From positions 1-64,000 of the forward strand of contig NIVC01001313.1 in the NCBI GenBank assembly GCA_002269645.1: a stretch of 64,000 bases of DNA, in the 5' to 3' direction. Of this stretch, positions 5,790 through 52,592 are shown piece by piece. The notes beneath the pieces were generated by a model that was not told the origin of the DNA, did not search any database, and saw only the letters and a list, made by a program, of their open reading frames with translations. Position 1 is the stretch's first letter. The number at the start of each line of letters is the position of its first letter. The position numbers were made by a program, and so were the translations under genes. The stretch is from Macrostomum lignano (taxonomy: Eukaryota).

Positions 5790-6419
5790 GCATAAACAGT
5801 AGACAAGGTAGGTAAAATAGACAAGGTAGGTAATGTAGGTCATGTAGGTAAAGTAGACAAGGTAGGTAAAGTAGACAAAGTAGGTAAAGTAGACAAGGTA
5901 GGTAAAATAGACAAGGTAGGTAAAGTAGACAAGGTAGGTAAAATAGACAAGGTAGGCAAAGTGGGCCAGGTAGGTAAAGTAGACAAGGTAGGCAAAGTGG
6001 GACAGGTAGGTAAAGTAGACAAGGTAGGTAAAACTGACAAGGTAGGTAAAATAGACAAGGTAGGGAAAGTGGGACAGGTAGGTAAAGTAGACAAGGTAGG
6101 TAAAGTAGGTCAGGTAGGTAAAAATAGACAAGGTAGGTAAAGTGGGCCAGGTTGGTAAAGTAGACAAGGTAGGTAAAGTAGGTCAGGTAGGTAAAGTAGA
6201 CAAGGTAGATAAAGTAGGTCAGGTAGGCAAAGTAGGCCAGGTAGGTAAAGTAGGTCAGGTAGGCAAAGTAGGCCAGGTAGGTAAAGTAGGTCAGATAGGC
6301 AAAGTAGGCCAGGTAGGTAAAGTAGGTCAGGTAGGCAAAGTAGGCCAGGTAGGTAAAGTAGGTCAGGTAGGCAAAGTAGGCCAGGTAGGTAAAGTAGGTC
6401 AGGTAGGCAAAGTAGGCAG
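5790..6419. repeat. 18-nt minisatellite (AAGTAGGTCAGGTAGGCA / AAGTAGACAAGGTAGGTA variants) starting at the amidase 3' end
   Basis: Directly visible; two sub-variants form separate blocks. Confidence 0.95.
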
Positions 6420-8973
6420 AAGCCGCCGCACAGCTGTTCGACGCCGAACGCGGCGTCCAGCAGTTGGCCGTCGCTGAACCTCCTGCCAACCAGCATAGCG
6501 CCGATGGGCAGCGGAGGCTCCCCGGCGGTGCGGCCGCAGTTCAGCGTGATGGCTGGATGCCCGCTGGCGTTGAACGCGGCGGTGTTGCCGATCATGCCAA
6601 GGCCGTGGTTGAACACTTCAACAACGCTGGCCGATTCGTCCAGAAGGCGAGGCGGTCGCATCGGCAGAGTCGGCATCAACAAATAGTCGACGCTATTTAG
6701 CGCGTTGTCATAGCAACGACGCAGCTCGCGTATCCAATTAGCCGCTTGGCTAAAGTGCTTCAAGCCGTAGTTACTGGAGAGAAACTCCGACATCAGCATC
6801 ACCACCTTGACGATGTGCTGATTGTCGGCAGGAAAAGTACGTCGACCTTTGAACGCGGCGTCGACAGCGTCGGGATCGACGTAGGCGTCGTCTAACGGCA
6901 AGGCGCCGTCGGTCAGGTAGGTGGCTCGGAAGCCGTGCAGCAGGTAGGGCAGGTAGAACGCGCCCGACTGGCTGTGCAGCGGCACCGACACCTTCGACAC
7001 TTTCGCACCGGCGCTTGCCAGCTTGCCGGCCAGCTGGCGGACGGCCTCGTCGACGTCCTCGTCGACACCGTGGAAGCCTTCGACAAGTAGGCCGAACGAA
7101 TATTTTGATAGGTCGCCGCGCAGCGACTCGGAGTAGTTGTCGACTCGCAGGTCGGTCGGCTGCCGGCGGTCAAGGCCGTCTCCGTCCAAGCCGGCGATGG
7201 CCTGCAGCAGGCGGGCCGCGTCCGTGACGGTGCGCGCCATCGGGCCCAGGTGGTCGATGCCGCGCATCATCGACAGCGCGCCGGTGTACGGCACCAGGCC
7301 GAATGTCGGCTTCAGTCCAACTATGCCGCACCAGGCGCTGGGGATTCGAATCGATCCGCCCTGATCCCCGCCGATCGCCATGTCAACTAGGCCCTTGGCA
7401 ACCAGGTAGCCGCAGCCGGAGCTCGAACCGCCGGCCGAGTGCAGCTCCGAGTGCGGATTTGGCACCGCGCCTTTGAAGGTGGTGTGGCTGGCACCGCTGG
7501 AATTTTAAAGTAGGTTTTTGAGTAAACGATGAAATGCTTAAATCACTACTTACAGTAGTCTGAAAGACTATTCACCGTTAAATTTTGAATTGGAAGCAAC
7601 GAAAATTAAGTTGGATAGGAAATTTACGAAGTTTTTTAAAAAAAATATTGAGGGTACTGGGTGAGAACAATATTCAGTGGCCCAACAACTGAGGATCTGC
7701 GAAGGCCAGCAACTGAGGATCCGGGAGGCTGCTCCAGCAACTGAGGATCTGGGAGGCTGATTCAGCAACTGAGGATCTGGGAGGCTGATTCAGCAACTGA
7801 GGATCTGGGAGGCTGATTCAGCAACTGAGGATCTGGGAGGCTGGCCCAGAAACTGACGATCTGGGAGGCTGGCCCAGCAACTGAGGATCTGGGAGGCTGG
7901 CCCAGCAACTGAGGATCTGGGAGGCTGTGGCCCAGCAACTGAGGATCTGGGAGGCTGGCCCAGCAACTGAGGATCTAGGAGGCTGGTTCAGCAACTGAGG
8001 ATCTGGGAGGCTGGCCCAGCAACTGAGGATCTGGAAGGTTGATTCAGCAACTGAGGATCTGGGAGGCTGGCCCATAACTGAGGATCTGGGAGGCTGCCCA
8101 AGCCGCACCTGAAGCACATGTCCTCGCAGACGGCCTTGCCAACAATCCGGCCGCCAGCAGCCAGAATTCTGGTGACCACGGTGGCATCTTCGGTGGGCAC
8201 GAAGCCCTCCAGCAGCTTGGAGCCGTTCATCATGGGTACCCCAGCCACGCTGACACTGTCCTTCAGGGCCAGGGTTTTGCCGGCAAGCGGCAGGCTGCTG
8301 TCCTGGGCCGCCGCCGGGTCCTTCAAGTCGCAGCGCCAGTACCAGGCATTGCCCGGATTGTCCGCGGCGCTGGCCCGCTGCCCGCAGCTCCTTGGCGGCA
8401 CCGGCTGCGAGGCGACTGTCGACGTTGAAGATCGCATAGGATTTTCCAGTCTGTTGTGTTGTGGGGATATTGAAAATCTGTTAAAAAATCAATATTCGCG
8501 GGAAGGACTGTGGGGCACTCTGGCGTAACGCCTTCGGCAACATCGCCCCACAACCAGCGCTGACGGCAATTCTGTGGGAATGACAAGGCCGCTGTACACC
8601 CTGTGTGAGCGTGTGCCTGCTTAACGGGTCATCGGAATGGGCACAACGGCTTGCCTGCTTGCTGGTTAAGATTCAAATTTCGCCTTGATCCGGCCCAACG
8701 CCAAAAAGAACCCTGAACCAACTGATAGACATGCTACAAACATTGACACATCAGCAATCACCTATCCAAAGAAGTGAGCGAGGCTGAGAGCTGGCCAATA
8801 AGCTCCTTGTAGGCTGTCAGCTCGTCATCGCTAGAACTGAAGCCGAACCGGTCAGATAAGCGCCGGAGCTCCTGCAGAGACGGCTGACGAAAAGCCTGAC
8901 GGCTGTACAGCGACAGGTGGCGGCAGGCGGCGGTGGCGGGGCGGAGCGAGGTAAGTCGGCGAACAGCTTGCAT
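6110..8973 (-). CDS. Amidase-signature family enzyme (bacterial-type amidase-like) with a putative mitochondrial presequence
   Basis: Exons 8973-8762, 8450-8109 and 7496-(6416 or 6110); GT-AG introns with consistent phase 2/2. Motifs LKDS (catalytic Lys), GGSSSG and [10 protein letters not shown] (Ser-cisSer-Lys triad), [17 protein letters not shown]. The N-terminus is Arg/Ser/Ala-rich with no acidic residues. Amidase homology ends at about 6419. Confidence 0.92.
7681..8100. repeat. 28-nt minisatellite (CAGCAACTGAGGATCTGGGAGGCTGGCC) in amidase intron 2
   Basis: Directly visible; same unit as 9058-9968. Confidence 0.95.
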
Positions 8974-9057
8974 GGCTTCCCGCTCTGAGGCTATGGCTCA
9001 TTAATCAAGGCAATCGTTTATTTATTTTTTAGTCCCTGTTGCCTACGGCAGGAGGAC

Positions 9058-9968
9058 TGCGGATCTGGGAGGGTGCGCGGTGGTGGCCCAGCAACTGAGG
9101 ATCTGGGAGGGTGCGCGGTGGTGGCCCAGCAACTGAGGATCTGGGAGGGTGCGCGGTGGTGGTCCAGCAACTGAGGATCTGGGAGGCTGGTCCAGCAACT
9201 GAGGATCTGGGAGGCTGGTCCAGCAACTGAGGATCTGGGAGGCTGGTCCAGCAACTGAGGATCTGGGAGGTTGGCCCAGCAACTGAGGATCTGGGAGGCT
9301 GGCCCAGCAACTGAGGATCTGGGAGACTGGCCCAGCAACTGAGGATCTGGGAGGCTGGCCCAGCAACTGAGGATCTGGGAGGCTGGCCCAGCAACTGAGG
9401 ATCTGGGAGGCTGGCCCAGCAACTGAGGATCTGGGAGGCTGGCCCAGCAACTGAGGATCTGGGAGGCTGGCCCAGCAACTGAGGATCTGGGAGGCTGGCC
9501 CAGCAACTGAGGATCTGGGAGGCTGGCCCAGCAACTGAGGATCTGGGAGGCTGGTCCAGCAACTGAGGATCTGGGAGGCTGGCCCAGCAACTGAGGATCT
9601 GGGAGACTGGCCCAGCAACTGAGGATCTGGGAGGCTGGCCCAGCAACTGAGGATCTGGGAGGCTGGCCCAGCAACTGAGGATCTGGGAGGCTGGCCCAGC
9701 AACTGAGGATCTGGGAGGCTGGCCCAGCAACTGAGGATCTGGGAGGCTGGCCCAGCAACTGAGGATCTGGGAGGCTGGCCCAGCAACTGAGGATCTGGGA
9801 GGCTGGCCCAGCAACTGAGGATCTGGGAGGCTGGCCCAGCAACTGAGGATCTGGGAGGCTGGCCCAGCAACTGAGGATCTGGGAGGCTGGCCCAGCAACT
9901 GAGGATCTGGGAGGCTGGTCCAGCAACTGAGGATCTGGGAGGCTGGCCCAGCAACTGCGGATCTGGGA
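9058..9968. repeat. 28-nt minisatellite, same family as 7681-8100, upstream of the amidase ATG
   Basis: About 32 units at 28-nt spacing (9361, 9389...). Confidence 0.95.
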
Positions 9969-10354
9969 AGGTAGGGTGATTGCCCAAGCAAAGGAAAATA
10001 GCTTTTATGAGAATTATGAAGATAAAACCCGACAGACAATAAAATATTAATACAAAGTGGCCGAGAGTGAAGCCTATAGTTATACCAAAATAACAAAATT
10101 CAGTATATTATTTAACAAAAACCAATGATTGCTTATAGAATGGAAAACACGCAGTAGTTTTAGGCCGCTCCCGAAATAACGCAATTAAGCCGGTGTGCAG
10201 TTTAACAAAATAAACAGAGAATTAGCTGAAAATTTCTACATTAATTAGACAAAAGAATTTTGTAAACGATAAAATCCTTTCCGTCCATTCATCCAGTTCA
10301 TAGACAACATCAAAGGTTGGTTGATTTTGGATCATTTTTTCCATTCATTCTGTG

Positions 10355-13732: not shown

Positions 13733-14250
13733 TCACGCAAACGCCAATCCAATAAAGAAGCCGCCAACAAAAGTGGTGCCGAAGCAGGCATTGGGGCCCG
13801 CCAAGAAATGGCGCGCTCTGTCTAGCAGGCCGCCGCCACCGCGGGCCCCGCCGCCCCCCATAGCGCCGGCCGCAGCGGCAACCTCCGCCTCCTGTACAAA
13901 CTGGCGTCCCAGCTGATTCAACCGGGTCCAATTCACCGTTACAACTCCGCGCTGTTGAGCAATCTGCAGACAGATGATGCCGCCGCCAAGCACCAAAGCG
14001 GCTGTGCGGCCAACCCGGCCAACCAGGTAGCCTGTCAGGCAGCCGCCCGCGCCACCGATCATCGCCTGCTGGCCGGGCGTGGCGTCAGCCAGCCTGCGAG
14101 AGGCTTCGGCGGCCGCCGTGGCCAGCTGACTGCCCACACCGCCGGAGCCGTCGCTGCTGCCGCTGCCTCCCGCTGAGTCCGACGCCGACGGCGGCGAGAG
14201 CAACTCGTCGGCCGGATCGGCCGCCTCCTGACCGGAGTGTGGCTGAGTCT
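13733..14250 (-). CDS. FUNDC1: FUN14-domain mitochondrial outer-membrane protein (main exon; 5' end not located)
   Basis: QAMIGGAGGCLTGYLVGRVGRTAALVLGGGIICLQIAQQRGVVTVNW...FGTTFVGGFFIGLA matches the FUN14 pattern of FUNDC1/2. The ORF N-terminus (14250-14542) is a 33-nt repeat. FUNDC1 and FUNDC2 cannot be distinguished here. Confidence 0.88.
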
Positions 14251-15806: not shown

Positions 15807-16491
15807 CATTGCGATTTCAGAAGCAATTAGCATGTTGAATTTAATCCAAGGGGCCAAACAGCTGCATCAAACAGTGCAAAGTTATTATAACAAAAACTAC
15901 ACAGTCAGTGCCTGTTTCCAGTGGTGCTACAGGAAGCCATACGATAGCTGTAAGCCAATCGCTGATGATGCAGCGCAGACTCCCGTTTCTCGTTTGAGTA
16001 GCGCAGCGATGAACTAACAGCTCTCCAAGGTGTTGTGCTGTAATAATTATCTAAAAAATGTAATTAGAAGTTTGGTTGAAAACGGGTGGCTAGTAACTAG
16101 CTCGGCCTAAAAAATCTTGGACGACGCCAATCAAACGAATAATTTTTTTAACAATTTGAGTGAAAATCGGTTTAATTTGAAAGAATCTCCAGATATTTAA
16201 AATATTGATTAGAAATCTAACCCGAATATTGCTTATTTAATCAAAAATTACCATAGACAACAGATTCCCGGCTCAAAATAGTACAATTTTTAACGATTAA
16301 ATAAGCAATCGTATTTTATATAACAAGACAATAAAAAATACACTTAGATTGGTTGCTCCACAGCCCCCCCCCCCAATTTTCATAGACAATGAAAAGCATT
16401 TTTTCAAAGGCTGGATCAAGGAGTTCTATAACTAACATCTGGACTGGAATACCGGTATGTCTGCTCCACGACCTGCTCGCTCTACACAATC

Positions 16492-17810: not shown

Positions 17811-17855
17811 TCTTCCTCTCCTTCCCCGCCTATCTCCCTCTCTCCATCTCCCTCT

Positions 17856-19779
17856 CTCGATGCCCCACACCGCAGTACTCCCAGCCGCACTCACTGTCTC
17901 TCCGATGCCCCACACCGCAGCACTCTCAGCCGCACTCACTGTCTCTCCGATGCCCCACACCGCAGCACTCTCAGCCGCACTCACTGTCTCTCCGATGCCC
18001 CACACCGCAGTACTCCCAGCCGCACTCACTGTCTCTCCGATGCCCCACACCGCAGTACTCTCAGCCGCACTCACTGTCTCTCCGATGCCCCACACCGCAG
18101 CACTCCCAGCCGCACTCACTGTCTCTCCGATGCCCCACACCGCAGCACTCCCAGCCGCACTCACTGTCTCTCCGATGCCCCACACCGCAGTACTCCCAGC
18201 CGCACTCACTGTCTCTCCGATGCCCCACACCGCAGTACTCCCAGCCGCACTCACTGTCTCTCCGATGCCCCACACCGCAGCACTCCCAGCCGCACTCACT
18301 GTCTCTCCGATGCCCCACACCGCAGTACTCCCAGCCGCACTCACTGTCTCTCCGATGCCCCACACCGCAGTACTCCCAGCCGCACTCACTGTCTCTCCGA
18401 TGCCCCACACCGCAGTACTCCCAGCCGCACTCACTGTCTCTCCGATGCCCCACACCGCAGCACTCCCAGCCGCACTCACTGTCTCTCCGATGCCCCACAC
18501 CGCAGTACTCCCAGCCGCACTCACTGTCTCTCCGATGCCCCACACCGCAGTACTCCCAGCCGCACTCACTGTCTCTCCGATGCCCCACACCGCAGCACTC
18601 CCAGCCGCACTCACTGTCTCTCCGATGCCCCACACCGCAGCACTCCCAGCCGCACTCACTGTCTCTCCGATGCCCCACACCGCAGTACTCCCAGCCGCAC
18701 TCACTGTCTCTCCGATGCCCCACACCGCAGTACTCCCAGCCGCACTCACTGTCTCTCCGATGCCCCACACCGCAGTACTCCCAGCCGCACTCACTGTCTC
18801 TCCGATGCCCCACACCGCAGTACTCCCAGCCGCACTCACTGTCTCTCCGATGCCCCACACCGCAGTACTCCCAGCCGCACTCACTGTCTCTCCGATGCCC
18901 CACACCGCAGCACTCCCAGCCGCACTCACTGTCTCTCCGATGCCCCACACCGCAGCACTCCCAGCCGCACTCACTGTCTCTCCGATGCCCCACACCGCAG
19001 TACTCCCAGCCGCACTCACTGTCTCTCCGATGCCCCACACCGCAGTACTCCCAGCCGCACTCACTGTCTCTCCGATGCCCCACACCGCAGTACTCCCAGC
19101 CGCACTCACTGTCTCTCCGATGCCCCACACCGCAGTACTCCCAGCCGCACTCACTGTCTCTCCGATGCCCCACACCGCAGTACTCCCAGCCGCACTCACT
19201 GTCTCTCCGATGCCCCACACCGCAGTACTCCCAGCCGCACTCACTGTCTCTCCGATGCCCCACACCGCAGTACTCCCAGCCGCACTCACTGTCTCTCCGA
19301 TGCCCCACACCGCAGTACTCCCAGCCGCACTCACTGTCTCTCCGATGCCCCACACCGCAGCACTCCCAGCCGCACTCACTGTCTCTCCGATGCCCCACAC
19401 CGCAGTACTCCCAGCCGCACTCACTGTCTCTCCGATGCCCCACACCGCAGTACTCCCAGCCGCACTCACTGTCTCTCCGATGCCCCACACCGCAGCACTC
19501 CCAGCCGCACTCACTGTCTCTCCGATGCCCCACACCGCAGCACTCCCAGCCGCACTCACTGTCTCTCCGATGCCCCACACCGCAGTACTCCCAGCCGCAC
19601 TCACTGTCTCTCCGATGCCCCACACCGCAGTACTCCCAGCCGCACTCACTGTCTCTCCGATGCCCCACACCGCAGTACTCCCAGCCGCACTCACTGTCTC
19701 TCCGATGCCCCACACCGCAGTACTCCCAGCCGCACTCACTGTCTCTCCGATGCCCCACACCGCAGTACTCCCAGCCGCC
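17856..19779. repeat. 45-nt minisatellite, about 42 near-identical copies, each with a GTGAGT donor on the minus strand
   Basis: Unit TCCGATGCCCCACACCGCAGTACTCCCAGCCGCACTCACTGTCTC. Confidence 0.97.
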
Positions 19780-22700
19780 AATCAAGGCCGCAGGCTGCAG
19801 CAGCGGACGAGCTCCGCCTGTGGAGACAGAACCCAACGAAGGAGACGCAGTCGTCGATGCCGATAGTCGAAGCTTATCAAGCAGTTCGACAGCTCCGGCT
19901 GCTACGGCAGATCGTCTAGACCGAATTAAACTGGCCAGCGCGGCGAGAAACTCTGGCTTGGCAGCAGCAGCAGAGGCGGCATCGGACAAGGCAGCTAGAA
20001 AAGCCAAACCGACCTCCTGAATCTCTTCGGCACTGATGCCTCCGTCCGGATCGGATAGCCCGCCACCCGACAGCCGCCTGCCGCAGGCGTCGTACTCGTC
20101 GGCATCATTGGCCAGCCGGATCGCTGCGGCGGCCAATTCGACAATTCCACCATTGACGAGGGCAACGCGCCAACGGTCGGCCAGAGCGACCAGGTTGCGG
20201 CAGAGGCCCAGGCTGGCCTTCAATAGCGGACGGCCGCACGGCAAGCCGTCAGCAGGCGTTGCTGATTTTACTGGACGACTCAACAGGCGAAGCAGCGCGT
20301 TTGGGCCGTCGCAGTTGAAGAATTCCTCGGCTGCTTGGTCCGCCTTTAAAGCGATTTTGGAACATTGTGAGAGGATAATAAAGATGATGATGAAATGGCA
20401 TTCCAAACTGACGACTGGGATCAATAATACAGACAGGATTTAAGATTTATAAATATGGAATCACGATTTGAGGATCAGAGATATGGGGTCACAATTTGAG
20501 GATCAGAGAGATAGGGGATCACGATTTGAGGATCAGAGATATAGGATCACAATTTGAGGATCAGAGAGATATGGAATCACAATTGAGGATCAGATATCAG
20601 ATAGGATACAGTTAGCGGGTTAGAGCAGCCACACAACCAACCAGCGGGTGGTCCCTAGTCACGTGACGCAGAGCGCAAACTAGCGGCTCGGCGAATTCCT
20701 CGCGAACGCCTGGCCGAATGGACAGCAGCGCCACAGTCAGGGCGGCTGATCCTCCAGCTTGAACAACGGCCCGCTTGCAGGGCCGGCTGCCGCAGGTGAG
20801 GTTGCACAGCAGGCCGGCTGCGCAGGTGGCCGTGTCAGCGTCTGGCGAGGTTAGCAGCCCAGTAAGACGGACGAGCAGATCGATGATGAGGCCTGCGAGT
20901 AGGGAGGGGAGGAGGAGGTGCCGAGTAAAGAGCGGGGTTCAGCAGAGGGCCGACAATGGATATAACAATTTTAATAATGCTAATGTCAATGCTAACATTA
21001 ACAATGTTGTTAATATCTAACACGTACTCTCACACACGCTCACACAGGGTGTACAGCGGGTTTTTACTGACTTTCTAATCATCAGGCATGTACACTCTGT
21101 GCCTTGGGCGCTGGCCCTCACGGGTTGTGAATCGCACAACATATCGGCTGGCACACAGCAGGCACCATGGAGACCTTACTAACAGAAATCCTCTTACCAG
21201 ACGCCAGCGAGCCTTCAAAGCAGCAGCAGTTGCTGAGATTGCGCAGCGGCCACAGGCAGCTGAGCAGTAGGCGAGGAGACGCGCCTGGCAACACAGCCTG
21301 GCCGGCCAGAGCTTCAAAACAGCCGGCGCGAATCACGGCCGACTTGCCGTTGGGCTCGACAGTCAGGGAGCGAAGCAGGCGAGCCGCGGCAACCAGCAGG
21401 TTTTGAACGTCCAGCTCCAGCAGGCGGCGCTTGGTTGCCGAATCACCTGCGGCACGAAACCAGTAATTTGCATGCTATGAAGACCTGTAGCTTAATGGTG
21501 CGGATTCAGTGGCACGGAGGTAGCGGAGAGGCAGATTTAGGACAGTGAAGAGGCAGATTTCGGACAGTGAAGAGGTAGATTTCGGACAGTGAAGAGGTAG
21601 ATTCGTACAGTTAAGAGGCAGATTCGGACAGTGAAGAGGCTGATTCGGACAGTGAAGAGGCAGATTTGGACAGTGAAAAGGCAGATTTCGGACAGTGAAG
21701 AGGCAGATTCGAACACAGGAGAGGCAGATTCGGACAGTTAAGAGGCAGATTCGAACACAGGAGAGACAGATTCGGACAGTTAAGAGGCAGATTCGGACAG
21801 TTAAGAGGCAGATTCGAACACAGGAGAGGCAGACTCGGACAGTTAAAAGGCAGATTCGGGCAGTTAAGAGGAAGATTCGGACATTTAAGAGGCAGATTCG
21901 GACAGTTAAAAGGCAGATTCGGACAGTGAATAGGCAGATTCGGACAGTGAAGAGGCAGATTCGGACAGTGGAGAGGCAGATTCGGACAGTTAAGAGGCAG
22001 ATTCGAACACAGGAGAGGCAGATTCGGACAGTTAAGAGGCAGATTCGGATAGTGAATAGGCAGATTCGGACAGTGAAGAGGCAGATTCGGACACAAGAGA
22101 GGGAGACTCTGCCCAGCTGCTCACCGAATGCCAGCAGCTGCAGGCAGTCAGCAGCGGATGCCAGCAGTCGGACATCGGCAAGGCCCAGCAAACCGGCCAG
22201 CAGCGGCAGGCCGGGCCTGGCGGATCGGCGCGCCTCCGGCACGCTGGCCAGCAGCCGGCGAAGGCAGGTGAGCGAGTGACTCAGCGACTGCGGATCCGTG
22301 ATGGCGGAGAGAAGCAGGGCTGGCGCAGACCTGCAAGAGTGGGTTTTAGTCAGTCAGGTATGTTTTACAGAAGGATTGGCTGCTTTGGGGCCGTGGGCAC
22401 AGGCCCACGCTCACACAGGGTGTACAGCGGCCCCAACTTTCTCATCGTCTGTGCCTTGGGGTGTTGGTGGGCTCATTGGTGTGAATGGCCCCGAATGAAT
22501 GTGGAATCAAACCCTCAATTGTTGTGGCGCGAGGATCAGCCTTAAGTACTTTACCTGCCACACACTCTGCCGCACCGCCAGATGGCCAAGCAGCCCCGCT
22601 CCGACTGGCTAATATGGCACAGTGCCGTCGCCGACAGACGCTTCGCCTCCTCGCCGCTGCTACTGCTGTCATCGTAGCGACAGTCCAGACGGGCCAGCAG

Positions 22701-23039
22701 AGCAGCCAGGAGATCCGGCTGGTCAATGAATGCCAGCCTACAGGCCTGCTTGCGGCTCAGCAGAGCGGCCAGCGCGGCGGCACCGTGAGCGGCGGTTGTC
22801 GACTCTGCCTCAGACTGAGACGGGTCGCCAACAAGCAACGCGGCCAGGTGGCTAGCGGCGTCGGCAGCGGCATCAGCGTCGATCTGATAATCAATCAGCA
22901 GCTCTACGGCGACTGCCAGGGCAGCCGACGGCGCCGACAGGCGGTTAACGCAGCTAGCGGTGGTCGTGGCATCGGCGGAGGCGACGTCTGGAAAGAAGGC
23001 CTGTTGGAGTCGAGCTGCCCGGCTGCCGCAGGCTGGCAT
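19740..23039 (-). CDS. CTNNB1-like: Highly divergent beta-catenin/armadillo paralogue
   Basis: Exons 23039-22555, 22330-22125, 21446-21198, 20892-20642 and 20343-19740, all GT-AG with phases 2,1,1,0. Colinear with beta-catenin: RAARLQQAFFPD (RAQRVRAAMFPE), LLIDYQIDAD (LINYQDDAE), LSRKQACR (LSKKEASR), DCLQLLAFG (DCLQILAYG), CLWPLRNLSN (CLWTLRNLSD), TCAAGLLCNLTC (TCAAGILSNLTC), EPLVCALRHVT (EPAICALRHLT), PLLKASLGLCRNL (PLIKATVGLIRNL). A last exon at about 17540-17400 is possible but uncertain. Confidence 0.9.
21530..22095. repeat. 21-nt minisatellite in beta-catenin-like intron 2 (GGCAGATTCGGACAGTGAAGA)
   Basis: Directly visible. Confidence 0.93.
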
Positions 23040-23109
23040 GCTGGCTGGCTGCAGATTGGGGTGCGGGTCGAGGAATTTTGGAAACAATCTGCTTTTAGTG
23101 ATTTGACAG

Positions 23110-23945
23110 AGCCCCTGAATCCTTCCCTGAGCCCCTGAATCCTTCCCTGAGCCCCTGAATCCTTCCCTGAGCCCCTGAATCCTTCCCTGAGCCCCTGAAT
23201 CCTTCCCTGAGTACCTGAATCCTTCCCTGAGCCCCTGAATCCTTCCCTGAGTCCCTGAATCCATCCCTGAGTACCTGAATCCTTCCCTGAGCCCCTGAAT
23301 CCTTCCCTGAGTCCCTGAATCCTTCCCTGAGTCCCTGAATTCTTCCCTGAGCCCCTGAATCCTTCCCTGAGCCCCTGAATCCTTCCCTGAGCCCATGGAT
23401 CCTTCCCTGAGCCCCTGAATCCTTCACTGAGCCCCTGAATTCTTCCCTGAGCCCCTGAATCCTTCCCTGAGCCCCTAGATCCTTCCCTGAGCCCCTGGAT
23501 CCTTCACTGAGCCCCTGAATCCTTCACTGAGCCCCTGAATCCTTCCCTGAGCCCCTGAATCCTTCCCTGAGCCCCTGAATCCTTCCCTGAGCCCCTGAAT
23601 CCTTCACTGAGCCCCTGAATCCTTCCCTGAGCCCCTGAATCCTTCCCTGAGCCCCTAAATCCTTCCCTGAGCCCCTGAATCCTTCCCTGAGCCCCTGAAT
23701 CCTTCCCTGAGCCCCCGAATCCTTCCCTGAGCCCCTGAATCCTTCCCTGAGTCCCTGAATCCTTATCTGAGTCCTTGAGTACCTGAATCTTTCACCGAGT
23801 ACCCGTATATTTTACTGAGTACCTGAATCTTTCACTGAGTCCTTGAATCTTTCACTGAGTATCTGAATCTTTCACTGAGTATCTGAATCTTTCACTGAGT
23901 ATCTGAATCTTTCACTGAGTATCTGAATCTTTCACTGAGTACCTG
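23110..23945. repeat. 20-nt minisatellite (GAGCCCCTGAATCCTTCCCT) between EXT2 and the beta-catenin-like gene
   Basis: Directly visible; drifts to GAGTATCTGAATCTTTCACT at the right end. Confidence 0.95.
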
Positions 23946-24297
23946 AGTTCTTGAATATTTTTACGAGTCACTGAATCAGCCCAAATCTCCGCTCGAAATC
24001 AAAGCTATTAAGACTATATTTAACTATTAATTTAGTTTAGGATATAGCAGGAGTTAACAAAAATTATTCATAAACACAGAAACTTCGATAAAAAAGGAAG
24101 CATGCATATGGACTCGTGTAGAGTCTGATGTAATTGTATCATAAACTTCATTAAAATAAGCACTAACAACTTTGACAGATATCAATATCGTATTTACACA
24201 AAGAAATGCACATTGAATGTACTAGGCACATACAAATACTGTTGTAATGAGATTCTTCGAGATTTACGACAAGAAAACAGAACGGTCAATTATAAGG

Positions 24298-36701: not shown

Positions 36702-39700
36702 CCCGCTGGGAAAAAACTGACTTACTGCGCCAGGTCGAAGAGCCAAGTAACCTGGCGCATTTGTCACCAACTTGGGCCATGGGTTGTTCGTATGTAAAAA
36801 AAACAAAGTTTTAGTGGTATGCTTTTATGAAAGTAATTTATTGTTCTGTAACAGTTATAAGTAAATAAAGATGTTTATTACATTTTACCTTCCAATAGGT
36901 AAAATCAAATAATTATCCAGTTACTGAGATCGGTGAATTTTTTAAAAAACTTAATCGTGCAAGTGATTAACGCGCGCGCGCGATTTGCGATCCGAATGAT
37001 CAATGAATATTTTATAGCTAACTTAAATTAAGCTTTGATTACTTGAAGAGTGTAATTCCATACATAATTTTGTTGTGAAATACGTAATTTGACAATTCAT
37101 GAAAACTGAAAAGCACCATTTTTGTCTATACTGTCTACTTTTATGTATATATAATACATTATTTATTGTTCACATCATTATCTTATTCGCAAAGCTGACC
37201 TAAAGACCCTATGCATATAAAATACATCTTAAGTCTGTTAGCTTTGTCTCAAGATGCAAATATAACATTGCATTTAAGTATAATTGCAAAGCTGATTGTT
37301 CCTTATAACCTCTAGACAGAGTAATTTAATTTCATTACTGGGATAGATCATTGGAGCTGTTTATTCTATGTCATGTGTGTGAACCTAATGTATTTGATAT
37401 GCTTTTAAATTTTGAAAATATAAACCAGAGTAGATTTAAAGTGTAGGCCCCAAATGTTTAGATACTCGAATATAATTCAGTGTTGCAAAAAGATAAAAAG
37501 TAATTTGAACCTAAAAAGTGAAAATGAAATGGAAATGAAAAACTATATCGATGATAATTGTGGTATATATACATATATATGTATTATTAGTACTAATTTA
37601 CTACTAATATTAAATTGGGGCCTATTATTATTAGTATTAGTATTTATATATTTGGATTTACTATTATGTAGTGTTGCTGAGAAGTTGCTATTAGATATGC
37701 AATAATTATGTATTGCATTGCTTATTGTATTGCAAATACTTTAGACACATTAGGACACTTTAATTAAAGCTATACTAGTTTGCCTAATCTTGTTCTTTGC
37801 TATATGTCGATATTTACAACGAAGTGTTGGTATTTATTGATGAATTCAAATTAGCTTTATGAAATTTTTAATACTTTTCTTAATGTATTTTAAATGCTAA
37901 AAGTAATGGCTTAACATGTTTAGAAGTTTAACATGTTTCTGTCTGTCTGATTATATGTTCATTGTCAAGTTGTGCTTCCTCTTTATTTTTTGCAAAAAAT
38001 TTTTTGCTAAATATATAATTTAATATAATAAACAAATTCATCAGATGCAAACATTGTACAACCAATTATTTCCTTTAGATGTATACTATTCATTTGCTAC
38101 AATTTTATATTGAAACACAAGTTTGATTTATTCACTATATTAATGTATGAAATGTCACATACTACCGCCAGATAATGTTTCATGGACGGTCAGTTCCAAC
38201 TGACAAGAGAGTCAGCTACTGGAGACAAACTGCACCAGTGCATGGTGCTTACCGAGGCGCTTCCGACAACTGAGTTGGCAAGCTCCGTGGCCAGCACTAT
38301 AAGCAAGGTGAGAAGCTTCTGTTAAATGATGTTGACATTACAATGCATGTATTCATATATGGATATTATAATTGCATTATATAATTATAATATGCATTGC
38401 TCCTACGTTCATATAATCAGGTTTGCAGAACGAGCAGCAATGCCGGCCAGCCTACAAGACAGGTGCCTCTGCCACAACAGTGCAGGAGGTGCCAAGTGTT
38501 GGACGCGGAGGTGAAGCAGCTACAGACCGAACTCGACGAGTGCCACAGAGAGATGCGCAGGGAGCTCAGCGTGCTCGAAGAAATAAGCAGGCACAATCTC
38601 CTGGGCAAGGTCGATGACATCTGGAACGCTGTCAGATCAGGCTCGTCAGCTCAGGCTACAATATCAGGTGCCATTGACCTGCAACGTAGCCCATTGGACG
38701 GCAACAGAAACGACGCCGTGAACGAGGCTGTATGCACCACCGAGGCCAACACCATTGCTTTAAGCGACCATCTCCCGGTGATCAGAATTCAGTGCAGTCT
38801 ACTGACCGCGGCAACTGCAAAAGTCGTCGGGATGCCGGTTGCTAAGGCGTTAGACGCATTGACGCGATCGCTTTTAGATGCTCTTGTCCCAGTAGAAGAG
38901 CGCCAGACTAAGTCATTGCTTCCTGTTTGTAAAGTTAAGTGTCAAACGATATATTCAACAAAAAAGTTTACGAGCGTACATGCACATTTTTTATTTCACA
39001 CTGCAATTCCTACAACCATCCTTGCCAAAATTATCATCCCACCTTTCCCTAGAAACCAAACAAAGAAATGCATTTCATAAACTTAAAATCAACCTTCAGG
39101 TGGAAACCCCGGCAGGAGTCCGCGCCTCGAGGATGTCATCGCTGACAGGGCATACGACCCTAGAGCTACGGCGATTGCTGCATTCGTTATCAAGCAGCTG
39201 GATGGGGTCACCCTGGCCGACGGATTCAGGGCGGTGAGAAAAGTTCTCCGATACGATCGCAAGGCGAGAAGTCGAACGATACGGCTGCAGGCAGTTTCTG
39301 CTATACCTACATCCTCAGCTTCTGCTGCAGCTGCATCCTCAGCTTCTGCTGCAGCTGCATCGTCAGCTTCTGCTGCAGCTGCATCGTCAGCTTCTGCTGC
39401 AGCTGCATCGTCAGCTTCTGCTGCAGCTGCATCGTCAGCTTCTGCTGCAGCATCCTCGATGGCCCAGGCCAACTACTGCGAGTCGACAAAGCCCAAACAT
39501 CCTCGACTGCTGCATACACAAATGGGCAACATTTCCCCAACGCCAACAAACGACAGCTTCACGACGTGCTTCAGCCAAATCGATGGAGAACTTATCAATA
39601 TGATAGAATTGTGAGACAATTGATTTTTTACTAACAACTTTTTGCCTCTTATCGTTAAGTTATCACGAATTTAGTGCTGTTTGCAGCCACGCACTAATTG

Positions 39701-40696
39701 CTTTTTTGTTTTGTTTTTTTCTGTTTTTTCTTTTGTTCTTCATGTTTGCTTCTTTACATATACATAACTGCTGTTCACATGGTGACCGCGGTCAGTGAAA
39801 GTCTGTGAAAGTAAAAAGCAATAGAAAAAATAGGGAAGCCAGATAAACTGAGAGCACAATCAGGGATTTTTTCTTGCGTTTCACACATTTTGTAAATGTT
39901 GCGTTTACAGCCATTCTCATACATGTAGAGTTATATTGCAATAGTTACGTCAATGTTTATTGAATTTTAAAAATCCTCTTCACAAGTGGCCACTGTTTCT
40001 AGAGCCACCCTCCACAAGGTTTTCAGCTGATTAAGCAAAGCGCGTATCCATTGTGAAAGTATACTAGCTGTAGATCCAGAAAATTTTTTCACATTGTCTT
40101 GAAAGTACAAGTTCGCATGTATCTCCTCTTTGCAATCAATGTATGCTCGTGTATACTTTTTGAAAAGGTTTTAAGATGTGCGTAATTTACATGCGCACCA
40201 CAAAAATATAAAACGATTTCTTTTGCCGTTACATAACAAAAAATTACGCAAAATTATGAAAATGCTACTGCTATTTTATTAACAGTGATCTTGCATTGCA
40301 TTGTTTGTCTTTTTAGACGGAAGGAGACGTTAATTATCTCTAATTTATAGCGCCTGCCTATGTACATGATGCAAATTATAAACTGAGCGCGTAATCAAGT
40401 CGTGTTTGTGTACACATACAAGGGAAAATCATTTAGTTTGGAAAAAAATCTATGCAACTAAATTTATAGTAGTACAAATTTCATACTTGCTACTGACGTT
40501 CAGTAGTTTGAATAGTATGCTGAACTGCTTTCTGTGCGCGTGCAAAATTCTGGGTCACTTTATGCCACGTCGGCGCCGCGTTGCCAAGTTGGTGCCGAGT
40601 TCTTAACGGCTTCCGATTGGTTGGTCGTCGTGGCGCTAACCTGGCGCAGACTGAGCCGCTCAACCCGGCGCATCCACCAACATTTTTCCCAGCGGG
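36702..40696 (+). mobile_element. 3995-bp TIR element (left palindrome arm), possibly CACTA/EnSpm-like and non-autonomous
   Basis: 14-bp TIR CCCGCTGGGAAAAA...TTTTTCCCAGCGGG. Subterminal TGCGCC(A/G)GGT motifs and ACCAACTTGG occur near both ends. Internal spliced gene, no transposase. Confidence 0.85.
38182..39614 (+). CDS. Three-exon, 382-aa CxxC + coiled-coil + BEN-like domain protein with an Ala/Ser repeat
   Basis: Exons 38182-38307 (AAG|GTGAGA), 38421-38928 (CAG|...|GTAAAG) and 39100-39614 (CAG|); total 1149 nt, in frame. CRRCQVLDAEVKQLQTEL; LTRSLLDALVPVEERQTKSLL..GNPGR...YDPRATAIAAFVIKQL...FRAVRKVLRYDRK follows the BEN helical pattern (my alignment by eye). Confidence 0.72.
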
Positions 40697-40708: not shown

Positions 40709-43700
40709 CCCGCTGGGAAAAATGTTGGTGGATGCGCCGGGTTGAGCGGCTCAGTCTGCGCCAGGTTAGCGCCACGACGACCAACCAATCGGAAGCCGTT
40801 AAGAACTCGGCACCAACTTGGCAACGCGGCGCCGACGTGGCATAAAGTGACCCAGAATTTTGCACGCGCACAGAAAGCAGTTCAGCATACTATTCAAACT
40901 ACTGAACGTCAGTAGCAAGTATGAAATTTGTACTACTATAAATTTAGTTGCATAGATTTTTTTCCAAACTAAATGATTTTCCCTTGTATGTGTACACAAA
41001 CACGACTTGATTACGCGCTCAGTTTATAATTTGCATCATGTACATAGGCAGGCGCTATAAATTAGAGATAATTAACGTCTCCTTCCGTCTAAAAAGACAA
41101 ACAATGCAATGCAAGATCACTGTTAATAAAATAGCAGTAGCATTTTCATAATTTTGCGTAATTTTTTGTTATGTAACGGCAAAAGAAATCGTTTTATATT
41201 TTTGTGGTGCGCATGTAAATTACGCACATCTTAAAACCTTTTCAAAAAGTATACACGAGCATACATTGATTGCAAAGAGGAGATACATGCGAACTTGTAC
41301 TTTCAAGACAATGTGAAAAAATTTTCTGGATCTACAGCTAGTATACTTTCACAATGGATACGCGCTTTGCTTAATCAGCTGAAAACCTTGTGGAGGGTGG
41401 CTCTAGAAACAGTGGCCACTTGTGAAGAGGATTTTTAAAATTCAATAAACATTGACGTAACTATTGCAATATAACTCTACATGTATGAGAATGGCTGTAA
41501 ACGCAACATTTACAAAATGTGTGAAACGCAAGAAAAAATCCCTGATTGTGCTCTCAGTTTATCTGGCTTCCCTATTTTTTCTATTGCTTTTTACTTTCAC
41601 AGACTTTCACTGACCGCGGTCACCATGTGAACAGCAGTTATGTATATGTAAAGAAGCAAACATGAAGAACAAAAGAAAAAACAGAAAAAAACAAAACAAA
41701 AAAGCAATTAGTGCGTGGCTGCAAACAGCACTAAATTCGTGATAACTTAACGATAAGAGGCAAAAAGTTGTTAGTAAAAAATCAATTGTCTCACAATTCT
41801 ATCATATTGATAAGTTCTCCATCGATTTGGCTGAAGCACGTCGTGAAGCTGTCGTTTGTTGGCGTTGGGGAAATGTTGCCCATTTGTGTATGCAGCAGTC
41901 GAGGATGTTTGGGCTTTGTCGACTCGCAGTAGTTGGCCTGGGCCATCGAGGATGCTGCAGCAGAAGCTGACGATGCAGCTGCAGCAGAAGCTGACGATGC
42001 AGCTGCAGCAGAAGCTGACGATGCAGCTGCAGCAGAAGCTGACGATGCAGCTGCAGCAGAAGCTGAGGATGCAGCTGCAGCAGAAGCTGAGGATGTAGGT
42101 ATAGCAGAAACTGCCTGCAGCCGTATCGTTCGACTTCTCGCCTTGCGATCGTATCGGAGAACTTTTCTCACCGCCCTGAATCCGTCGGCCAGGGTGACCC
42201 CATCCAGCTGCTTGATAACGAATGCAGCAATCGCCGTAGCTCTAGGGTCGTATGCCCTGTCAGCGATGACATCCTCGAGGCGCGGACTCCTGCCGGGGTT
42301 TCCACCTGAAGGTTGATTTTAAGTTTATGAAATGCATTTCTTTGTTTGGTTTCTAGGGAAAGGTGGGATGATAATTTTGGCAAGGATGGTTGTAGGAATT
42401 GCAGTGTGAAATAAAAAATGTGCATGTACGCTCGTAAACTTTTTTGTTGAATATATCGTTTGACACTTAACTTTACAAACAGGAAGCAATGACTTAGTCT
42501 GGCGCTCTTCTACTGGGACAAGAGCATCTAAAAGCGATCGCGTCAATGCGTCTAACGCCTTAGCAACCGGCATCCCGACGACTTTTGCAGTTGCCGCGGT
42601 CAGTAGACTGCACTGAATTCTGATCGCCGGGAGATGGTCGCTTAAAGCAATGGTGTTGGCCTCGGTGGTGCATACAGCCTCGTTCACGGCGTCGTTTCTG
42701 TTGCCGTCCAATGGGCTACGTTGCAGGTCAATGGCACCTGATATTGTAGCCTGAGCTGACGAGCCTGATCTGACAGCGTTCCAGATGTCATCGACCTTGC
42801 CCAGGAGATTGTGCCTGCTTATTTCTTCGAGCACGCTGAGCTCCCTGCGCATCTCTCTGTGGCACTCGTCGAGTTCGGTCTGTAGCTGCTTCACCTCCGC
42901 GTCCAACACTTGGCACCTCCTGCACTGTTGTGGCAGAGGCACCTGTCTTGTAGGCTGGCCGGCATTGCTGCTCGTTCTGCAAACCTGATTATATGAACGT
43001 AGGAGCAATGCATATTATAATTATATAATGCAATTATAATATCCATATATGAATACATGCATTGTAATGTCAACATCATTTAACAGAAGCTTCTCACCTT
43101 GCTTATAGTGCTGGCCACGGAGCTTGCCAACTCAGTTGTCGGAAGCGCCTCGGTAAGCACCATGCACTGGTGCAGTTTGTCTCCAGTAGCTGACTCTCTT
43201 GTCAGTTGGAACTGACCGTCCATGAAACATTATCTGGCGGTAGTATGTGACATTTCATACATTAATATAGTGAATAAATCAAACTTGTGTTTCAATATAA
43301 AATTGTAGCAAATGAATAGTATACATCTAAAGGAAATAATTGGTTGTACAATGTTTGCATCTGATGAATTTGTTTATTATATTAAATTATATATTTAGCA
43401 AAAAATTTTTTGCAAAAAATAAAGAGGAAGCACAACTTGACAATGAACATATAATCAGACAGACAGAAACATGTTAAACTTCTAAACATGTTAAGCCATT
43501 ACTTTTAGCATTTAAAATACATTAAGAAAAGTATTAAAAATTTCATAAAGCTAATTTGAATTCATCAATAAATACCAACACTTCGTTGTAAATATCGACA
43601 TATAGCAAAGAACAAGATTAGGCAAACTAGTATAGCTTTAATTAAAGTGTCCTAATGTGTCTAAAGTATTTGCAATACAATAAGCAATGCAATACATAAT

Positions 43701-44703
43701 TATTGCATATCTAATAGCAACTTCTCAGCAACACTACATAATAGTAAATCCAAATATATAAATACTAATACTAATAATAATAGGCCCCAATTTAATATTA
43801 GTAGTAAATTAGTACTAATAATACATATATATGTATATATACCACAATTATCATCGATATAGTTTTTCATTTCCATTTCATTTTCACTTTTTAGGTTCAA
43901 ATTACTTTTTATCTTTTTGCAACACTGAATTATATTCGAGTATCTAAACATTTGGGGCCTACACTTTAAATCTACTCTGGTTTATATTTTCAAAATTTAA
44001 AAGCATATCAAATACATTAGGTTCACACACATGACATAGAATAAACAGCTCCAATGATCTATCCCAGTAATGAAATTAAATTACTCTGTCTAGAGGTTAT
44101 AAGGAACAATCAGCTTTGCAATTATACTTAAATGCAATGTTATATTTGCATCTTGAGACAAAGCTAACAGACTTAAGATGTATTTTATATGCATAGGGTC
44201 TTTAGGTCAGCTTTGCGAATAAGATAATGATGTGAACAATAAATAATGTATTATATATACATAAAAGTAGACAGTATAGACAAAAATGGTGCTTTTCAGT
44301 TTTCATGAATTGTCAAATTACGTATTTCACAACAAAATTATGTATGGAATTACACTCTTCAAGTAATCAAAGCTTAATTTAAGTTAGCTATAAAATATTC
44401 ATTGATCATTCGGATCGCAAATCGCGCGCGCGCGTTAATCACTTGCACGATTAAGTTTTTTAAAAAATTCACCGATCTCAGTAACTGGATAATTATTTGA
44501 TTTTACCTATTGGAAGGTAAAATGTAATAAACATCTTTATTTACTTATAACTGTTACAGAACAATAAATTACTTTCATAAAAGCATACCACTAAAACTTT
44601 GTTTTTTTTACATACGAACAACCCATGGCCCAAGTTGGTGACAAATGCGCCAGGTTACTTGGCTCTTCGACCTGGCGCAGTAAGTCAGTTTTTTCCCAGC
44701 GGG
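40709..44703 (-). mobile_element. Second, inverted copy of the 3995-bp TIR element (right palindrome arm)
   Basis: Mirror coordinates sum to 81405 at the ends, the centre and all paired ORFs. Confidence 0.9.
41791..43223 (-). CDS. Mirror copy of the BEN-like gene (exons 43223-43098, 42984-42477, 42305-41791)
   Basis: Same as the left copy except at least one substitution (DHLPV versus DHLPA; 38779 T versus 42626 G). Confidence 0.72.
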
Positions 44704-52175: not shown

Positions 52176-52592
52176 TAGTTGCTTTTAATCAAAAAATGTT
52201 CGATTAGTCCAGGCACAAGCTAAAAATAAATGAAAATTAATTTAATATATTTTTATCTCCCACGTGCATACTCTGAAGCTTGCGAATAATTTAATTATTT
52301 ATAGCTCGTAGCATCAGCTCAAGAAGTTAAAGTTTAGTCTATGGCCATAGACGTATTATTATTTTTCGAGCTCTCACTGCGAGAAAAATACACTAATTAG
52401 ATAGGGAAAATACAGTTTTTTGAATATTTAAGACCTTTAGAATTGAAGCAGATAAAAGAAATGTTAACCATACAATCCTTGGTTGAGTTGCAACTTTTTG
52501 GTGAAAACGCAATCAAAATTGGTCAAGAATTGCAGTCTGTAGAGCGTTTTACACGGACAGACAGACATAGATTAGAGATTTAGTATATAAGA
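52176..52592 (-). mobile_element. Helitron 5' fragment (related family)
   Basis: Minus strand begins TCTTATATACTAAA followed by (GTCT)n. Confidence 0.6.

Follow-up and report, generated by a model that had tools for sequence, protein, structure and literature searches.

A beta-catenin paralog in the window

The stretch of DNA analyzed here, called the window, is 64,000 nucleotides of contig NIVC01001313.1 from assembly GCA_002269645.1 of the flatworm Macrostomum lignano, and all coordinates are window positions. Its minus strand carries a six-exon gene, spanning 23048 to 15905, that encodes a divergent beta-catenin shortened at both ends. The predicted protein of about 646 residues begins with a short N-terminal stub, followed by the alpha-catenin-binding helix, armadillo (ARM) repeats 1 to 11, and then about 85 disordered, non-homologous residues. 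In a GT..AG splicing model the coding parts of exons 1 to 5 are 23039-22555, 22330-22125, 21446-21198, 20892-20642, and 20343-19740, and their translation is 100% identical to the GenBank entry "hypothetical protein BOX15_Mlig034493g1, partial" (P0001), the window protein in what follows. The exons are these:

22555 to 23048, minus strand: exon 1, with the RAxR/FFPD motif, the alpha-catenin-binding helix (Y142 equivalent), and ARM1-2; donor CAG/GTAAAG at 22554
22125 to 22330, minus strand: exon 2, ARM3-4 (ADCLQLLAFG), carrying F253S, H260R, K292R, and F293L
21198 to 21446, minus strand: exon 3, ARM5-6; GDSATK is K312, NGKSAV is K354, CLWPLRNLS is W383/R386/N387
20642 to 20892, minus strand: exon 4, ARM7-8; CGSRPCK is K435, CALRHVT is R469/H470
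19740 to 20343, minus strand: exon 5, ARM9 (PLLKASLGLCRNL is K508), ARM10, ARM11, and a degenerate remnant of ARM12 helices 1-2
15905 to 16050, minus strand: exon 6, 48 non-ARM residues (NNYYSTTPW...GNRH); stop TGA at 15907-15905, ATTAAA at 15845-15840

A preliminary description had placed a beta-catenin homolog on this strand, ending at 19740. The homolog is there, and exon 5 does end precisely at 19740, but the gene continues past a 3.7-kb intron to exon 6. A homeologous locus (L001) on contig NIVC01000458.1 encodes a protein (P0002, BOX15_Mlig023640g3) that is 96% identical to P0001.

The gene is a true beta-catenin homolog. Against the PDB sequences, phmmer aligns residues 7-508 of the query with residues 89-571 of full-length zebrafish beta-catenin (PDB ID: 2z6g) at E = 1e-46. 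Beta-catenin and plakoglobin account for all of the top 23 matches, and HMP-2, the adhesion-only beta-catenin of C. elegans, comes next (PDB ID: 4r10, E = 4e-23). AlphaFold2 models of both homeologs form the ARM superhelix, and the top 50 Foldseek matches are all beta-catenin, plakoglobin, or HMP-2. A Pfam scan gave no match for the window protein or its homeolog even at E = 0.1, whereas both of the sister paralogs described below match Arm. The family assignment hence rests on phmmer and Foldseek, and the missing Pfam match is a measure of how divergent the sequence has become. Its composition is skewed, with 18% Ala and 16% Leu.

BOX15_Mlig034493g1 is very probably expressed, because the M. 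lignano annotation was built from RNA-seq, spliced-leader/trans-splice, and poly(A) reads (PMC5730564). Two older UniRef models of this gene family in M. lignano, P0003 and P0004, are frameshifted and misleadingly named; one is called "WAPL domain-containing protein," and the second, which runs into the EXT2-like gene as a fusion, is called "Glyco_transf_64 domain-containing protein."

Ligand-binding residues

Residues were checked in a MAFFT alignment with human CTNNB1 (781 aa, with the expected residues at positions 33, 37, 41, 45, 312, and 435). In the alpha-catenin-binding helix, V122, L125, L132, V136, L139, I140, and Y142 are kept. In the groove, the residues kept are K312, K354, W383, R386, N387, N426, K435, R469, H470, K508, R515, and N516, and K312, W383, R386, N387, K435, and H470 stand in invariant columns of a 60-sequence alignment. 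The changed positions are K345R, F253S, H260R, K292R, F293L, D162A, D164S, H578A, R582D, and R612A. F253S, H260R, and K292R alter the Axin/TCF pocket in ARM3-4, and D162 and D164, which we take to be the acidic residues that bind BCL9, have become Ala and Ser.

The preliminary description had reported equivalents of K312, W383/R386/N387, K435, R469/H470, and K508, and every one of these is identical to human CTNNB1. Its reading of NGKSAV as K345 was mistaken, since that motif aligns with human K354 and the true K345 position is Arg. The broader statement that the ligand groove is kept holds for the ARM5-9 core, but it fails for the ARM3-4 pocket and for D162/D164.

Differences between the homeologs

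The window copy lacks 60 bp of exon 3, in frame, compared with its homeolog, and the junction lies between 21403 and 21402. The 20 missing codons (L001 11353-11412, SRLAGLLRRRHQSSPTPADE) align with ARM5 helix 2, right after K312. The predicted local distance difference test (pLDDT) score of AlphaFold2 for ARM5 is 71-84 in P0001 versus 88-97 in P0002. The fit to known structures follows the same direction: the best Foldseek E-value is 5e-16 for P0001 versus 4e-21 for P0002, the target-normalized template modeling (TM) score is 0.54-0.67 versus 0.62-0.75, and the root-mean-square deviation is 7-10 Å versus 5-9 Å (mostly 6-7). Either the deletion is real, making this a hypomorphic allele, or the assembly is in error here; the window copy, without ARM5 helix 2, may be a weakened allele or homeolog.

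Outside the deletion the two copies are close. Over 1756 aligned coding nucleotides there are 12 differences (0.68%), falling in 8 synonymous and 4 non-synonymous codons, and the unique intron segments differ by 1-6%. The counts are small, although the contrast of exon with intron argues against a pseudogene that drifts freely.

The 5' end

Two features lie upstream of the start codon:

23049 to 23054, minus strand: CTGCAG, a candidate spliced-leader trans-splice acceptor, immediately 5' of the first transcribed base at 23048
23109 to 23946, no strand assigned: a 20-bp minisatellite within the spacer of 1252 bp that separates the beta-catenin paralog from the EXT2-like stop (24298)

The ATG at 23039 directly precedes SRAARLQQAFFPD, which aligns with human TRAQRVRAAMFPE, residues 89-101, so the first ATG does sit just ahead of the RAxR motif, as had been described. 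The protein thus starts at the equivalent of human residue ~89, and the residues from about 1 to 88, which hold the degron, are missing. The N-terminal DSGxxS(xxxS/T)n degron (GSK3/CK1, beta-TrCP) is absent from the window protein. A regular-expression search for the extended degron found none. With human CTNNB1 as the query at E ≤ 50, tblastn against the whole 64-kb window found no N-terminal exon, and its matches were confined to the five ARM exons.

The mRNA model begins 9 nt ahead of the ATG, and both GenBank models begin at most 3 nt from the AG at 23050-23049, P0002 at 23048 and P0001 at 23045. In M. lignano the trans-splice acceptor motif is [T/C]TNCAG, and the 35-nt leader has an ATG at its end (PMC8629364). 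CTGCAG at 23049 to 23054 matches that motif and, going by the annotation boundaries and the motif together, is likely the spliced-leader trans-splice site. Because the mRNA model starts at an acceptor of this type, an exon coding for the degron is not expected. If the leader is joined to 23048, its ATG is in frame with the open reading frame (ORF) and puts MPAS before the genomic Met (M-PAS-MPACG...). A start codon donated in this way would explain the 5'-partial flag that GenBank has on the coding sequence.

About 840 bp of the 1252-bp spacer is the 20-bp minisatellite, which leaves a repeat-adjusted distance of about 410 bp to the EXT2-like gene. That falls within the intergenic distance under 1 kb used as an operon criterion for this species (PMC8629364). 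The homeologous gene is named Mlig023640g3, and by the naming scheme the g3 suffix would make it number three in a transcriptional unit. Between the homeologs, the unique stretches of the EXT2-side spacer are 100% identical, and conservation there is uninformative for spotting exons.

Translated, the minisatellite repeatedly gives ...SGKDSGAQGRIQGLREGFR..., and hence DSGKDS; DSGALS strings are also present. One DSGKDS is in frame with the ATG at 23039 (position 23333, with an upstream ATG at 23396). We considered this upstream ORF as a cryptic degron and rejected it, since the minisatellite encodes the string and, in the homeologous locus, the frame stays open for just 48 codons; DSGKDS is on both grounds a chance product. 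A chance match to the beta-TrCP degron consensus just upstream of a beta-catenin gene is a trap for motif searches. The earlier statement that there is no DSGxxS in the ~1.2 kb up to EXT2 is, taken literally, wrong, but its biological point stands, the strings being accidental and a homologous exon absent.

The 3' end

One repeat array dominates this end of the gene:

17852 to 19778, no strand assigned: 42.8 copies of a 45-bp minisatellite, open in all six frames, which take up most of intron 5

ARM10, including its loop and the conserved motif G-[IV]-x-x-EE-I, and ARM11 (PEFLAALASLIRSRRSAVAAGAVELLDKL) are both present. Beyond ARM11 there is a possible remnant of ARM12 helices 1-2 (GGARPLLQPAAL), and by alignment ARM12 helix 3 (Y654), the Y654/F660 region, helix C, and the C-terminal domain are absent. 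The tblastn search of the whole 64-kb window at E ≤ 50 found no exon for ARM12 or the C-terminus of human CTNNB1. In place of twelve ARM repeats and helix C, the alignment and the two AlphaFold2 models give repeats 1-11 and then pLDDT below 50. Confidence drops past the ARM11 helix, at residue ~563 in P0001 (where the last confident helix ends at 562-564) and ~588 in P0002. The gene had been described as one repeat short between ARM10 and ARM12; the loss is instead at the end, in ARM12 helix 3, helix C, and the C-terminal domain. That a typical transactivation tail is missing was seen correctly: nothing past ARM11 resembles the transactivation domain, and the tail, one repeat unit plus exon 6, is predicted to be disordered. 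The protein ends in ...TTGNRH, with no C-terminal PDZ-type motif.

Every 45-bp unit carries the consensus donor GTGAGT, and the homeolog has 16.8 copies. Exon 5 ends within the first unit, which supplies a perfect donor, ACA/GTGAGT (19739-19734). The GenBank model for P0001 splices from there to exon 6 (16050-15905) at the acceptor ttttttag/AT, making exon 6 residues 601-648 of P0001. Exon 6 has 1 difference in 146 nt between the homeologs versus 13 in the 300 nt of its flanks, and its ORF is intact in both. The GenBank model for P0002 instead reads through the repeat as 17 copies of the 15-residue GWEYCGVGHRRDSEC, a tail with AlphaFold2 pLDDT below 35. We prefer the spliced end, since there is a donor in every unit, the copy number is 43 versus 17, and exon 6 is conserved at both loci; the read-through C-terminus is a conceivable but less likely isoform.

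Relatives among the beta-catenins

An exhaustive HMMER search over 1.84 billion representatives places two other M. lignano groups nearest, Mlig009386 (767 aa, E = 2.6e-59) and Mlig026881 (746 aa, E = 6.4e-58), with canonical beta-catenins at about 1e-40. The corresponding clusters are P0005 (BOX15_Mlig009386g1/033977g1/011379g1) and P0006 (BOX15_Mlig026881g1/g3), and over the ARM core the window protein is 44% identical to the former and 42% to the latter. A neighbor-joining tree was made from 500 ARM columns with 300 bootstraps, the sequences including none identified as planarian beta-catenin-3 or -4. The window gene joins Mlig009386 at 94%, and all M. lignano paralogs join at 99%. The flatworm beta-catenin-2 clade (Smed ABW79874.1, Hymenolepis, Cichlidogyrus) has 100%, the link between that clade and the M. 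lignano clade has 66%, and triclad beta-catenin-1 (Bdelloura) is placed elsewhere. The window gene has the longest branch in the tree and is the most divergent of the three M. lignano paralog groups.

The gene looks to have arisen within the M. lignano lineage, and its truncation looks lineage-specific because the nearest relatives are the two other M. lignano paralogs (99%). A tie to planarian beta-catenin-3/4, implied by the preliminary description, is unsupported by this grouping in a tree without named planarian 3/4 sequences. Four sequences with a DSGIQT N-terminus and an end after ARM11 (P0050/62/69/76) were tried as candidates for planarian beta-catenin-3/4 and set aside: those of their relatives that carry names are canonical beta-catenins, from arachnids among others, and a planarian origin is therefore not demonstrable.

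The two sister paralogs share with the window gene the motifs KKQACRLAF, GALCHI, and GLCRNL. P0006 keeps the 12 repeats, helix C, Y654, F253, D162/D164, and a C-terminal tail, all of which the window gene has lost. P0005 keeps H260, K292, and K345, has Asn at F253, and has a degenerate ARM11-12 and a long tail ending in ...WYNTAKI, whereas the window gene lacks H260, K292, K345, and the tail. The window protein also starts about 60-85 residues later than either. Neither sister has a DSGxxS, and the absence of the canonical degron may for that reason be a feature of the lineage rather than a specialty of the window gene. P0006 has a Thr/Ser-rich YTTTTTSRTST at the position that aligns with the degron. 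When P0006 was used as the query, no additional M. lignano beta-catenin of a more canonical type turned up, although the search was word-limited and one may exist. Unless it does, control of beta-catenin turnover in M. lignano may be unusual.

Truncated and specialized beta-catenin paralogs are already established in flatworms (PMC5643146), and a 2026 preprint alludes to an expansion in Macrostomum, citing Kibet et al. 2025. Smed-beta-catenin-3/4 are C-terminally truncated and inhibit beta-catenin-1/TCF-2 (PMC5643146). They resemble the window protein in keeping the K312/K435 groove and in losing the last ARM repeat(s), helix C, and the transactivation domain, and Smed-beta-catenin-4 also retains the alpha-catenin site (PMC5643146). 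In contrast to the window protein, Smed-beta-catenin-3/4 retain the N-terminal GSK3 sites and the F253 pocket. TCF inhibition was shown for the planarian proteins; for the window protein it would be a prediction. Because the tree, built without named 3/4 sequences, places the window gene with the M. lignano paralogs, its truncation looks convergent with, rather than orthologous to, that of planarian 3/4.

Smed-beta-catenin-2 (ABW79874.1, P0024) is alike in the kept alpha-catenin helix and K312/K435, in having no DSGxxS, and in not conserving F253 and H260. It differs in having ARM12 (Y654), helix C, and a C-terminal tail, described with a PDZ motif (Su et al. 2017, PMC5643146), whereas the window protein ends after ARM11. 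With the canonical beta-catenins (human CTNNB1; zebrafish 2z6g) the window protein shares the fold, 35% identity over ARM1-11, and the groove hot-spots. Compared with them, it lacks residues about 1-88, ARM12, helix C, the C-terminal domain, F253, D162/D164, and ARM5 helix 2.

Neighboring genes and repeats

The gene stands in a row on one strand:

~6110 to 28459, minus strand: four genes, namely the EXT2-like gene, the beta-catenin paralog, a FUN14-domain gene (13733-14239), and an amidase (6110-8997)

The EXT2-like gene has Exostosin_GT47 and Glyco_transf_64 domains and stops at 24298, on the same strand as the beta-catenin paralog. The order EXT2-like, beta-catenin, amidase is repeated on the homeologous contig, where the intervening gene model has no Pfam match on record. 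The row may be transcribed as a single polycistronic unit, or as several, and then be resolved by trans-splicing.

Elsewhere in the window there is a perfect 3,995-nt inverted repeat (36702-40696 and 40709-44703) with arms 100% complementary around a 12-nt spacer, each with a 227-aa ORF (plus strand 38397-39080; minus strand 42325-43008). The perfect identity of the arms in a PacBio-based assembly suggests a palindromic assembly artifact from a missed adapter, not a real hairpin locus. Tandem Repeats Finder gives 27 rows with a score of at least 400 and periods of 18-80 bp, some of them overlapping on one array, which fill most introns and spacers. This density is consistent with the reported 15% tandem-repeat content of the M. 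lignano genome. Long ORFs that overlap on the two strands (for example 52549-53458 and 9018-10096) are minisatellite products, not genes.

Possible roles of the paralog

The reading we favor, with a probability of roughly 40%, is that the protein is a signaling-dead, Wnt-insensitive linker of cadherin and alpha-catenin at junctions. With the degron missing and the Axin pocket altered, DSGxxS-dependent phosphorylation and degradation would be impossible. Activation of transcription would be impossible too, given the lack of ARM12, helix C, and the C-terminal domain and the loss of D162/D164, presumably the BCL9 residues. Binding of cadherin and alpha-catenin is predicted to be retained, probably through the alpha-catenin helix and the K312/K435 buttons, and any effect on Wnt output would come only by passive sequestration of partners.

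Of what an adhesion-type beta-catenin should look like, we find the alpha-catenin helix and K312/K435 kept and the degron and Axin pocket lost; a complete ARM12 and a C-terminal PDZ-type motif are not there. Of the marks of the 3/4 class, the protein has the C-terminal loss with the K312/K435 platform kept, and it has no N-terminal GSK3 sites and carries F253S and H260R. The junctional role is ranked above that of a TCF decoy because the adhesion-only Smed-beta-catenin-2 likewise keeps K312/K435 without F253/H260. Planarian beta-catenins without the last repeats still co-precipitate E-cadherin (PMC5643146), which makes the loss of ARM12 compatible with adhesion. The preliminary description had offered a stable TCF competitor or an adhesion-specialized paralog. 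The architecture underlying that proposal stands (no degron exon expected, the C-terminal loss, the groove, and the alpha-catenin helix), the details on the repeat and K345 do not, and the sequence leans to adhesion without deciding between the two.

Several points weigh against the junctional linker. K312, K435, R469, H470, and K508 also serve TCF and APC, so a nuclear decoy is equally compatible with the groove. ARM12, which through the Y654 region aids cadherin binding in vertebrates, is missing, and there is no C-terminal PDZ-type motif like the one described for Smed-beta-catenin-2. The deletion beside K312 lowers model confidence and fit, and the deleted copy may bind nothing well. The M. 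lignano sequences are rich in Ala, Leu, and Arg, which could have skewed the neighbor-joining tree, and the trans-splice site is deduced from annotation boundaries and a motif rather than from reads.

A possible but somewhat unlikely alternative is an inhibitory beta-catenin that enters the nucleus, occupies TCF through its ARM3-9 groove, and blocks transactivation, as a constitutively stable analog of planarian beta-catenin-4. The groove residues just named would serve it, the loss of D162 and D164 suits it, the gene appears to be under purifying selection, and the C-terminal truncation resembles that of the beta-catenin-1/TCF-2 inhibitors Smed-beta-catenin-3/4 (PMC5643146). However, the planarian proteins have GSK3 sites and the window protein has none, and the grouping with the M. 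lignano paralogs (99%, with no identified planarian 3/4 in the tree) gives no tie to them. The alpha-catenin helix, which a pure nuclear decoy does not need, is also retained.

Distinctly unlikely, in our estimate, is a decaying duplicate that has lost both ends and is drifting, with the window copy an effectively non-functional allele or homeolog. What speaks for decay is that neither homeolog matches Pfam Arm while the sister paralogs do, that the branch is the longest in the tree, that 60 bp of a structural helix is deleted with lower pLDDT and TM than in the homeolog, and that the C-terminus is assembled partly from a minisatellite unit and an unrelated exon. But the ORFs are intact over six exons in both homeologs, the exons differ by 0.68% (8 synonymous and 4 non-synonymous codons) versus 1-6% in the introns, and exon 6 is better conserved than its flanks. 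All groove hot-spots are kept despite about 55-60% divergence from the sister paralogs, and the annotation is transcript-based. Very improbable is a decoy for the destruction complex or cadherin, titrating APC or cadherin to raise a signaling paralog as a positive modulator, for which ARM-only beta-catenin constructs in Xenopus are the model: the residues that we take to be the APC contacts are kept or conservatively changed (K345R, W383, R386) and without a degron the protein would escape turnover, but the Axin pocket is altered (F253S, H260R, K292R) and the idea is carried over purely from over-expression in another phylum.

Implications for flatworm beta-catenins

Flatworms divide the adhesion and signaling functions of beta-catenin among paralogs, and in planarian beta-catenin-4 a truncated copy tunes Wnt output (PMC5643146). 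What looks new in M. lignano is the loss of both ends together with an apparently independent origin and a 5' end probably made by trans-splicing. A bolder version, which we hold to be unlikely as a whole, is that macrostomorphs independently evolved a natural "ARM-only" beta-catenin, without degron, D162/D164, or transactivation end, expressed from an EXT2-containing polycistron by trans-splicing, perhaps with a start codon supplied by the leader. Such a protein would be a constitutive, Wnt-insensitive buffer of TCF, APC, or cadherin, convergent with planarian beta-catenin-4 and outside the control of the destruction complex.

The corrected gene model is useful for the design of RNA interference and hybridization chain reaction probes, as GenBank lists the gene as a hypothetical protein and the UniRef names mislead, although this gain is incremental. 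If the paralog was independently derived, it would be a second, convergent "dead" beta-catenin, and it could help explain differences in Wnt phenotypes among flatworm lineages.

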